Below, piece by piece: positions 2,977 through 11,755 of a stretch of 11,755 nucleotides of DNA; the stretch's first letter is position 1; each line of letters opens with the position of its first letter. The notes under the pieces were generated by a model that was not told where the DNA came from, did not search any database, and worked only from the letters and a program-made list of their open reading frames with translations. Position numbers and translations under genes: made by a program. This stretch comes from Ascoidea asiatica JCM 7603 (taxonomy: Eukaryota; Fungi; Ascomycota), in contig BCKQ01000004.1 in assembly GCA_001600695.1 (NCBI GenBank), positions 1,136,068-1,147,822 of the forward strand. Direction: 5' to 3'.

Positions 2977-3181
2977 ATAGAACTTATATAAGATTATATA
3001 ATGACTTATATGTATATTAAAATTATTTTACTACATTATTATAAAGTAATTTTTTGAATTTTGGGTAAAAGTTATAAATAATTAAAAAACCTCAAAATTT
3101 TTATAGCGTCAAAGATTATCTGAAAAATGTTTTAAACTTTTGGGGTTTTGTAATTTTGCTCTTAACTAAAGAAATGTTATT

Positions 3182-3253
3182 TCCGATATAGTGTAACGGT
3201 GATCATACCTCGCTTTCACCGAGGAGACCCGGGTTCGACTCCCGGTATCGGAA
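3182..3253 (+). tRNA. tRNA-Glu (anticodon TTC), intronless
   Basis: Acceptor stem TCCGATA/TATCGGA; anticodon stem CCTCG/CGAGG with loop CT-TTC-AC (anticodon 3215-3217); T arm CCGGG-TTCGACT-CCCGG. Closely resembles yeast tRNA-Glu(UUC). Confidence 0.98.
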
Positions 3254-3255
3254 TG

Positions 3256-3540: not shown

Positions 3541-3634
3541 CAGCTCATTAGGGGCTGGAACCCTAGACATTTCGGTTACTTGAAATTAAAAAATCCCTAA
3601 AAGCCAAACGCTCTACCAACTGAGCTAATGGGGA
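3541..3634 (-). tRNA. tRNA-Lys (anticodon TTT) with a 21-nt intron (3577-3597); probably a pseudogene
   Basis: Minus strand reads TCCCCAT TA GCTC AGTTGGTA GAGC G TTTGG CT-TTT-A [GGGATTTTTTAATTTCAAGTA] A CCGAA ATGTC TAGGG TTCCAGC CCCTA ATGAGCT G. The D, anticodon and T stems are intact and match yeast tRNA-Lys(UUU). However, the acceptor stem has 3 mismatches out of 7, the T loop reads TTCC instead of TTCG, and the intron contains T6. Confidence 0.88.
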
Positions 3635-8281: not shown

Positions 8282-8640
8282 CAATAGAATAGAATATAAA
8301 ATAATAATAGAATACAAAAGTTTTAAAATAAATAATGATATTATTATAAATTGCTATCGAGTTTTGATTATAGAAAAATCAAACATTTATAAATATAACT
8401 GAATATAAATGTAGTAAGTAAGTAAACTACATTAATCATAAAGTCTCAGTTGAATAAAACTTCGAAAGTCGATAAAATAAAATCAAATAAAATATTATAA
8501 AATGATTCATAAAAGGTTAAACTAAACATTTTACAGTATGAATCATAGTATCAAACTAGTGAATTCAAAGAAGACGATAGTTGCCTGCGATTCGCAATTC
8601 ACACCAAATATTCAATACTGATAAATTTCACCGTACTAAA

Positions 8641-8655
8641 AGCATTACTAATGCT
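8641..8655. promoter_or_regulatory. Yap1-type element TTACTAA within a perfect palindrome
   Basis: AGCATTA-C-TAATGCT; TTACTAA at 8645-8651, about 400 nt upstream of the SIS gene. Confidence 0.4.
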
Positions 8656-8685
8656 CAACGGTATTCAAGTTAAATTGGTAATAGC

Positions 8686-8718
8686 TGCTAAGAGAGTGCT
8701 AAGAGAGTGCTAAGAGAG
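8686..8718. repeat. 11-bp tandem repeat TGCTAAGAGAG, 3 copies
   Basis: Three exact copies. Confidence 0.9.
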
Positions 8719-8912
8719 TATTGAGAGATAGGCTTGCTTTTGCGCGTTGTTTTTTCCTGTTTCTCTCCACGCAGTTCTTCCACCATTTTTCCAGCGCTGT
8801 TCGAGCTGTTTTCATGTGAAACTGCAGCTCCGGCTCCGGCGCCTCGCTTTTATAATGTAGTCCGTTGCACGGATTGGCTTCAATGCCGGTATGGACGGCG
8901 TGTCAGAGTGCG

Positions 8913-9075
8913 TGCCAAACCACGTGTCGGGAGCTGATTTGGCATATGAAATATCTTTCAGCCAGCTCCATCCGATATTGGGCCGTTATTGGCTTCTTCA
9001 GTCTCCGTAATCGGGCATAAGTACCTATCCGTGATTATCCACATTTATCCGGACCATGCCCCACTCTCGGATAAA
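8913..9075. promoter_or_regulatory. GC-rich island in the divergent SIS/ARD promoter with E-box, CGGATAA and CCCCAC motifs
   Basis: TGCCAAA (8913-8919) and TTTGGCA (8938-8944) flank CACGTG (8921-8926). TATCC recurs at a 10-bp period (9026, 9036, 9046). TTTATCCG (9044-9051) and CGGATAAA (9068-9075) form an inverted pair. CCCCAC lies at 9059-9064. Confidence 0.45.
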
Positions 9076-9797
9076 CTTAAAGACCCAGAATTCTGGGACT
9101 GCTTTATCATGCAGAAACCCACTCGTCCATTCGAAGTTAAAATTCCTTTGTAATTTTCATTTTTTATTCTAAAATTTATTCAACAATAATTGATACTGTA
9201 ATATTCAATATTTAATATTCGTATTATTTCATTTTTTAGTTCTAATAAGCTTAATTTTAATTTTAATTTTAATTTAAATTTTAAAATATTTGACTCGTTT
9301 AGAATCATGAATTTTATAATCAATTAGGAAAATTACAATATAAAAGAATTCGATTTACATAAATTGGGATGAATTAAATAATTATCAATAATTATCAATA
9401 CTAAAATTTCGAAATGTTCCATTGTTTCATTAAAAATGAGTTACTTTTTTCATTAAATAATACTATTTTTATCTAATAATACATTTTTTTTTTGTATATA
9501 AGAATATTCTGAATTCTAAAAAGTTTTTCCCCATATTTTTATATGCTTAAATGATTTTCTGTTCATCTGAATTCTCATATACTTCAAACAAATATAATTT
9601 TACTCTTATAATAATTTATTCTTAACTACTTATCTCCCTTTTTTTTCTTACTTTTTGAAGAAGAGAAAAGTGTAACCATATAAAATGTTTGGTATAATAT
9701 ATTGGATATATTCCATGTTATTATAATGTATATTTTATAAGTTTCTTTTTGATCAATAAAAGTAATTTGGATATAAAATTTTAAAAATATACTCAAA

Positions 9798-10683
9798 ATG
9801 ACTAATGATATTGAAACTATTACTGATATAGTTCCAAATTTTAGATTAGATAAAAAATTAGCTGTTATTACTGGAGGTGCTGGTGGTTTAGCTTCACCAA
9901 TTAATAAAGCTTTATTAGCTCAAGGTGCTTCAATTGCAATTGTTGATCTTAATAAAGATTCTATTAAAAATGCTGAAAATGAATATTAATTGGGCTAAAT
10001 TTAATAATATTCCAATTAAAACTTCTGATGGAATTTCTAAAATTTCTTCTTGGGAATGTAATGTTATTGATTATAATCAAATTACTAAAACTATAAATTC
10101 AATTAATTTATTTCATAAAAATATTGCAAGTTTATTATTACATACTGTTGGTTATTGTAATCATTTTCCTGCAGAAGATTATCCACCAGAAAAATTACAA
10201 AATTTAATTAATGTTAATTTAACAGGTTCTTTATTTTTCAATCAAGCAATGGCAAAACCTTTAATTAATTCAAAAAAATCAGGTTCTTTTATACTTATCG
10301 GTTCAATGTCTGGTGTTATTGTTAATGTTCCTCAAAATCAACTTGCTTATAATTCTTCAAAAGCAGGTGTAATTCATGCTGTTAAATCTTTTGCAACTGA
10401 ATGGGCAAAATATAATATTAGAATAAATTGTATTTCTCCAGGTTATATTGCAACTCCATTAACTGAAGTTTTTATTAATTCAAATCCACAAATGAAATCT
10501 GAATGGGAATCAAGAGTTCCAATGAATTCTTTTGGATTTGCCATTCTAATCATTGGAACTGTTTTATATTTCTTTTCTGATTCTGCTTCTTCCATATTTA
10601 CTCTTTATTTATCTATTCATTTTATTTTTATTTATGTTTATACAAATTGCAATAAACTCTTTACAATCTTTATAACTCTTTAA
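9798..10683 (+). pseudogene. Disrupted D-arabinitol 2-dehydrogenase (short-chain dehydrogenase/reductase, Candida/Pichia ARD1-like)
   Basis: The N-terminus IVPNFRLDKKLAVITGGAGGLA carries the TGxxxGxA Rossmann motif. The second frame has GSMSG, catalytic YNSSK and EWAKYNIRINCISPGYIATPLT. Lesions: a +1 frame break near 9984 (GAA TAT TAA vs ATT AAT TGG), an inverted segment at 10526-10549, and loss of homology after SDSASS (about 10593) with no terminal TG..L.VDGG motif. Confidence 0.85.
10515..10560. repeat. Perfect 11-bp inverted repeat enclosing an inverted 24-nt coding segment
   Basis: AGTTCCAATGA (10515-10525) and TCATTGGAACT (10550-10560). The reverse complement of the spacer is TTAGAATGGCAAATCCAAAAGAAT. 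Confidence 0.95.
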
Positions 10684-10840
10684 AGAATTAAAAACTTTCA
10701 TATTTTGTTTCCATATTTTGTTTTGAGACTCTCTTTATAAACCATCACTCGCCACACCATTTCACTCAAATTTCCAATAAAAACTGGGGTTGTTTCCCAA
10801 TATGGAAATTACTGATAAAATCACCCCGGTTTTTTAAACA

Positions 10841-10906
10841 TTGTGGCTATATTTACCCGTTTAGGTCTTTATTTACCCTTTTTTGTGGCTGTTTGACCCG
10901 CCGCGG
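10841..10906. promoter_or_regulatory. Degenerate 20-bp triple repeat carrying Reb1-like TTACCCG motifs
   Basis: TTGTGGCTATATTTACCCGT / TTAGGTCTTTATTTACCCTT / TTTTGTGGCTGTTTGACCCG, with exact TTACCCG at 10853-10859 and CCGCGG at 10901-10906. Probably a promoter for a gene beyond the window. Confidence 0.4.
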
Positions 10907-11755
10907 GGACTCGAAGTCAGCACGGCTGTGCTGCAGCGTGGCGTTTTTGTCTGGTTCTCGGATTATCTCTTCACCTGTTTTCACGCAGACTCCGAATATA
11001 ATTTGAAATAGCTTTATTTTAAAGAATTTGGAGAAAATGGTTTATTCAATACTCATATTGAATTGGAAATTGAAATCTGAGATAAAATTTGAATTGAAAT
11101 ATGTTATTTGAATTCAAATATTAAAAAACTATATTAAAGAATAAACTGAAAAGATTCGAGTCTTGAAAAGTTGCGTGGTGAAAAATGAAAAGCTTTTATT
11201 GGTGAATTAAACAGAAACAAAAAGTGGGCTATTGTAAAAAGCAACTCCCCAACTTTTAAAAATAGATGACTTCTTATTTTCTTAGACTTATTAATAACAA
11301 GTAATTTCAATTTCAGTTAACTTTGTTATCCATAGATGATCAAAATTTTAAGATTTCAAAATTAATCATCTAAATTTCACAAATTTAATTATTGTACTTA
11401 AATCTTTTTAAAACTTATCTTTATCTTTTGTTCGAGTTAAATAAACGTTAACTTAAAATATTATCATTGCTTGGTGTAGTATAAAATTAGCGAATTTCAA
11501 ATTTTCTTTTTCCTCTTATATTTTTCTTCCTCTTCTTTTTTTTTTATTTATCTTATTTTTCTTCATTTTTATTTAATTCAAAATAAATAATATATATTAT
11601 ATTCTTTTTCCAAGTAATTATATATCTTTTTATCTTTAAGATTTTTTTTTCTTAATTTCTTAATCAAATCTTTATCTTTCGCTGTATATTTTCGTCAAAT
11701 TATATTTTATCTATATTTTAATCAATAATTCCATTAAAACAAATAATTACTTTCT

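Follow-up and report, generated by a model that had tools for sequence, protein, structure and literature searches.

We found that 24 nt of a dehydrogenase pseudogene of the SDR family are inverted in the 11,755-nt stretch of Ascoidea asiatica JCM 7603 DNA that was analysed (the window). The inverted segment is the spacer between the arms of a perfect inverted repeat, and its inversion is confirmed by homology: after reverse-complementing, the spacer encodes a conserved loop of the family in the frame of the surrounding gene. We put at about 0.8 the probability that a single template switch during replication, at a quasi-palindrome with imperfect arms, turned the segment around where it lay; the templated mechanism and its strand polarity are inferred. 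In the strain or strains sequenced, the inversion is fixed, and it is without function. The coordinates of the features discussed below are collected in Table 1.

Table 1. The dehydrogenase pseudogene and the inverted repeat within it (positions are those of the window).
Feature	Positions	Strand	Remarks
N-terminal piece of the SDR pseudogene	9798-9986	+	63 codons; TGGAGGLA cofactor-binding motif; stop caused by a frameshift
2-nt deletion site, E-L-I-N/S-W region	9984-9985	+	from DNA alignment with paralogues L002 and L003; shifts the frame
Main body of the pseudogene, second frame	9988-10602	+	catalytic Ser and Y-x-x-x-K kept; 72% identity with the tandem paralogue
Left arm of the inverted repeat	10515-10525	+	codons for V-P-M; looks ancestral
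Inverted spacer, 24 nt	10526-10549	+	reverse complement encodes I-R-M-A-N-P-K-E, the conserved loop of the family
Right arm of the inverted repeat	10550-10560	+	codons for F-I-G-T; seems to have been rewritten to complement the left arm
T-rich tail to the stop	10603-10683	+	unlike the C-terminus of the paralogues (TGENIVVDGGYQLW/CW)

The inverted repeat and its spacer

The two arms are complementary at 11 of 11 positions, and the strand that carries them can form a stem of 11 bp (-10.6 kcal/mol, z -2.6). As written, the frame across the repeat reads RVPM-NSFGFAIL-IIGT, and reverse-complementing the spacer turns it into RVPM-IRMANPKE-FIGT (translations: RVPMNSFGFAILIIGTVLY as written, RVPMIRMANPKEFIGTVLY flipped). 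No stop codon is present in either orientation of the spacer. The alignment to homologues is gapless at the spacer, and thus its length was unchanged by the inversion. The original prediction had described this repeat with exact arm and spacer coordinates and translations, including the perfect arms and the two stop-free orientations, and the Candida-type family motif that it had cited, IPMKRMAEPKEFVGSILY, occurs verbatim in six retrieved orthologues. On the minus strand, a 50-codon ORF (10443-10595) contains the sense-coded VPM-IRMANPKE-FIGT segment placed there by the inversion; there is no sign of its expression.

Homology of the reverse-complemented spacer

The inversion is proven by the homology of the reverse-complemented spacer, and not by the repeat itself. 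A profile of 47 orthologues was used, from which the genome's own copies were left out. The gene body scored 282.5 bits against this profile as written and 306.5 bits after flipping, a gain of 24.0 bits. Among the 592 possible 24-nt flips across positions 9988-10602, the sole one to gain 24 bits starts at position 10526; the runner-up flips (+7.1 and +5.2 bits) are both partial ones of overlapping segments, compared with a median of -17 bits over all flips.

The family consensus at the motif is KIPMKRMADPKEFVGTVLY. Within the stretch encoded by the spacer, flipping restores the R, M, P, E, and F residues, which are conserved in 44/44, 43/44, 43/44, 44/44, and 43/44 orthologues, respectively, while none of the eight spacer-encoded positions matches as written. 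At the level of DNA, the flipped spacer is identical to seven homologous genes at 18-21 of its 24 positions, a level similar to that of the flanks, compared with 5-8 of 24 as written. The inverted segment was also recovered as a minus-strand tblastn match (E 1.2e-6).

Chance expectation of such repeats

Repeats were counted when their perfect arms had at least 11 nt and at least 4 G/C and were separated by a spacer of 10-40 nt, with first-order Markov simulations as the null. The number expected by chance is 0.02 per window. For 200 kb sampled from the same contig, the expectation was 0.8 such repeats and one was observed, the repeat at 10515-10560. Extrapolated to a 20-Mb genome, tens of such repeats would arise by chance, and the repeat alone proves nothing. 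Five other perfect repeats containing G/C were present in the 200-kb sample; in a cursory check of the reading frames, flipping apparently improved none of them, and one, located within a kinase-like ORF, is plainly correct in its present orientation.

In the same sample and under the same null, perfect short inverted repeats made of A/T only numbered 159 vs 95 simulated (~1.7-fold), while those with at least three G/C numbered 6 vs 6.5 simulated, with no enrichment.

The host gene and its paralogues

Judged from its sequence, the locus at 9798-10683 is a pseudogene of a D-arabinitol-2-dehydrogenase-like SDR, the decayed member of a tandem pair. Members of the SDR family are expected to have an intact ORF of about 275-285 codons, and the window copy is without one. 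It is considered a pseudogene because its frame is broken at ~9985 and its C-terminus is lost, besides the inversion. The N-terminal piece matches the Pfam family adh_short (E 5.2e-5) and is aligned by tblastn with residues 1-65 of L002, the tandem paralogue, at 65% identity. The main body matches adh_short_C2 (E 1.1e-31); here, tblastn aligns positions 9985-10602 with L002 residues 67-272, and the SDR motifs are found as GSMSG and YNSSK. An intron at ~9985 was considered in place of the frameshift and rejected, since the paralogues align straight through this point with two bases missing. Homology ends at ~10602, where the last 13-14 residues of the paralogues are swapped for the T-rich tail. 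The missing C-terminus was not found elsewhere in the window by tblastn or short-word blastn on both strands, and a search of both strands of the window revealed neither a second inversion nor a reverse-complement source for the tail. No homology was found between the flanks of the pseudogene and those of the paralogues, and the latter offered no source for the tail either.

Among named proteins, the best matches are budding-yeast D-arabinitol 2-dehydrogenases, headed by that of Ascoidea rubescens with 59% identity; no protein of another organism above 59% identity was found. Two intact paralogues are present in the same genome. The coding sequence of L002 begins ~74 nt past the right end of the window and includes the stretch that reads RVPMRRIADPKEFVGTVLY, and L003, located on another contig, reads RIPMHRMAKPKEFVGTILY. 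A maximum-likelihood tree had the topology (A. rubescens,(L003,(L002,window copy))), in which the tandem pair was supported at 100/96. The dN/dS values were 0.41-0.53 for the window copy against the paralogues and 0.34 for the intact paralogue pair, and the branch of the window copy was no longer than that of its sister. These values and the branch length could fit a copy that was long constrained and decayed recently.

Origin of the inversion

The repeat region was compared with seven homologues: paralogues L002 and L003, the genes of A. rubescens, Saccharomycopsis crataegensis, and Wickerhamomyces mucosus, and two Logan contigs. The spacer is in the forward orientation in all seven, and their arms are complementary at only 4-7 of 11 positions. 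Every base of the left arm of the window copy is common to at least one homologue, none being unique among the eight sequences. Two bases of the right arm differ. Position 10552 is A in the window and G in 7/7 homologues (Val>Ile), and position 10557 is A in the window and T in both paralogues (GGT>GGA). Both A residues create pairing with the left arm; two derived bases out of 11 are a small sample. At position 10525, the window has an A that differs from both paralogues and is the same as in A. rubescens, and the codon to which it belongs varies more than any other position of the motif. The V-P-M codons are nearly the reverse complement of the V/I-G-T codons, and this is what makes the region a quasi-palindrome. 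From the paralogues (~72% protein identity) and the orthologues, and not from an unflipped allele of the locus itself, we infer that the arms would have been imperfect before the event.

In the proposed mechanism, the nascent plus-sense strand would finish the left arm and then anneal to the near-complementary right arm on the other template, with 9 of 11 pairs plus one G-T in our reconstruction. The spacer, and after it the left arm, would be copied backwards, and synthesis would then return to the original template. In the product, the left arm would be followed by the reverse-complemented spacer and then by a sequence fully complementary to the left arm, without any change of length or frame. 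One such switch would be sufficient both to invert the spacer and to rewrite the right arm, which would account for Val>Ile at 10552 and for GGT>GGA at 10557; it requires that position 10525 had already been A. The lesion replaced nine consecutive residues (10525-10551), which belong to the conserved loop and the start of a helix.

The original prediction had favoured a replication template switch or a hairpin inversion, fixed in a gene undergoing decay. This reading is supported by the two further lesions of the gene, the forward spacers and imperfect arms of the homologues, the confinement of derived bases to one arm, and the contigs described below. One point against a template switch is the length of the spacer, since 24 nt is far more than the 2-5 bp of the S. 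cerevisiae survey considered in the Discussion, and short spacers are reportedly favoured.

The same end product would be obtained if the arms had first been perfected by point substitutions and the segment had then been inverted by a non-templated process, such as hairpin or cruciform processing or break-and-rejoin recombination. The stem of 11 bp can fold with the stability given above, and the arms were perfect beforehand in 9 of 10 S. cerevisiae cases (PMC8604942). Against this, two to three prior substitutions, each creating a pair, would be needed, including the Val>Ile change that is absent from 7/7 homologues, while a template switch accounts for the same bases in one event. Homologous recombination in yeast normally needs far more than 11 bp. 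Perfection of the arms followed by inversion is therefore the less parsimonious course, and we regard it as unlikely.

Orientation in read-derived contigs

Contigs built by k-mers from the reads of three public runs (X1-X3) were compared with the window. The runs come from two studies (2016 and 2023) and carry one organism code. Over positions 10437-11100, the contigs of all three runs match the window with zero differences and in the as-written orientation. Upstream, over 9600-10395 (X1 and X2) and 9600-10315 (X3), they match without differences or gaps. Contig depth across the inversion equals that of the flanks (36-50x). In each run, the depth over 10518-10568 is made up by this contig together with the final seven bases of the contig of the L003 paralogue, and a loose end at 10524 is the end of that L003 contig. 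No other contig, in either orientation, was found over 10518-10568 in the three runs, contigs being known to drop rare variants. All three lesions are thus real in the sequenced material; the runs may be of the assembly's own strain.

The original prediction had also raised, as a speculative idea, a reversible switch within the gene. If programmed or frequent, such a switch would toggle the protein in the population. The perfect arms and the two stop-free orientations are in its favour, as are the 2-3-bp spacers of S. cerevisiae that, between perfect repeats, have flipped back and forth recurrently within short evolutionary times (PMC8604942). Several results speak against it. The frameshift and the missing C-terminus affect the gene whichever way the spacer points; no working enzyme can come from either form, and flipping back could not restore one. 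The arms, whose conservation the original prediction had proposed as a check, are not kept in paralogues or orthologues, as the 4-7/11 complementarity indicates. The three runs yielded no flipped contig, and the written form accounts for the depth, within the limits of contigs that lose rare variants. The genes of the window (MFS transporters, a Na/H exchanger, a SIS protein, and the SDR) do not include a recombinase, and no recombinase domain was found by Pfam among its large ORFs. Three of four features of a programmed switch (arm conservation, a recombinase, and a functional product) are thus missing, and we consider the switch extremely improbable. A rare mutational flip-back through a second template switch is possible. 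It is very doubtful that, through its perfect arms, the site still undergoes repeated template switches often enough for its flipping to be measured; if true, the locus would be a natural reporter of how frequently such switches occur in a non-model yeast when the spacer is as long as 24 nt.

In sequencing libraries, inverted repeats are known to give rise to fold-back artefacts, and the written sequence could in principle be an assembly or sequencing artefact in a genome whose true orientation is forward; this can be dismissed as hardly credible, since independent contigs from three runs reproduce the written sequence exactly and at the depth of the flanks (at the level of contigs, the check for an artefact proposed in the original prediction thus came out in favour of real DNA), and since the 11-nt arms, shorter than the 31-nt words of the assembler, cannot confuse the assembly graph.

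Other features of the window

The window is very AT-rich (~23% G+C) and contains a fungal SRP RNA gene. Two GC-rich islands stand out from this background. The island at 10720-10990, between the pseudogene and its tandem paralogue L002, occurs once in the genome and is matched by no Rfam family, even at E 1. It was considered as the end of a repeat or transposon that truncated the gene, and rejected on account of its single copy and the lack of an Rfam family; it could be the promoter of L002 or an undescribed RNA gene. The island at 8560-9120 (43% G+C vs the 23% background) lies between a divergent SIS-domain gene and the dehydrogenase pseudogene, has no Rfam match, and contains an 11-nt unit in three tandem copies at ~8688-8720.

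On the minus strand, a 94-nt match to the Rfam tRNA model (33.8 bits) was found at 3541-3634. It is not reported by ARAGORN and adjoins a tRNA-Glu gene (3181-3254); it may be an intron-containing tRNA gene.

Discussion

Template switching and what it does to coding DNA in yeast have been described before, and the present case is a larger example. In a survey of S. cerevisiae strains, Abraham and Hazkani-Covo (2021; PMC8604942) reported spacer inversions by template switching in coding genes, with spacers of 2-5 bp. In REG2, the inversion was accompanied by homogenisation of the arms and changed five residues, and some of the spacers had flipped back and forth repeatedly (PMC8604942). The A. 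asiatica locus resembles these cases in that a short perfect repeat (arms >9 bp) lies inside a yeast coding sequence, and in that the spacer has given way to its exact reverse complement at the same length, so that adjacent amino acids are replaced as a block. As in REG2, one arm is rewritten to match its partner. The locus differs from the S. cerevisiae cases in scale, the spacer being 24 bp and the number of residues affected nine, compared with at most five. It differs also in its host, a pseudogene in which the change is unfiltered by selection, and in the source of the ancestral state, which is provided here by paralogues and orthologues and there by sister strains.

Short-range template-switch mutations are treated by the four-point model of Loytynoja and Goldman (2017; PMC5453318). 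In that model, a cluster of apparent substitutions results from one reverse-complement copy of a neighbouring stretch, and a perfect hairpin-forming repeat is left as a by-product, as at this locus. The studies of the four-point model and of quasi-palindrome mutagenesis in bacteria and yeast considered here deal mainly with non-coding human or ape DNA and with reporter assays, whereas the present event is in frame within a gene. A likeness to the invertible switches of bacteria, which depend on site-specific invertases, is limited to a segment bounded by inverted repeats and having two possible orientations. Unlike those switches, the locus has no recombinase, its arms are unconserved, one orientation is seen, and the gene, which is that of a fungus, is dead.

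No long-standing question is opened by the micro-inversion. It is an unusually clean natural example, with nine adjacent codons rewritten in frame and with intact paralogues in the same genome as a built-in control. Aligners and annotators take such events for bursts of substitutions or for a 'divergent loop', which may mislead tests for positive selection and estimates of pseudogene age. For coding DNA of yeasts, spacer inversions had been known at 2-5 bp, a range that is now extended to 24 bp, and the case fits the view that long events survive only under relaxed selection.
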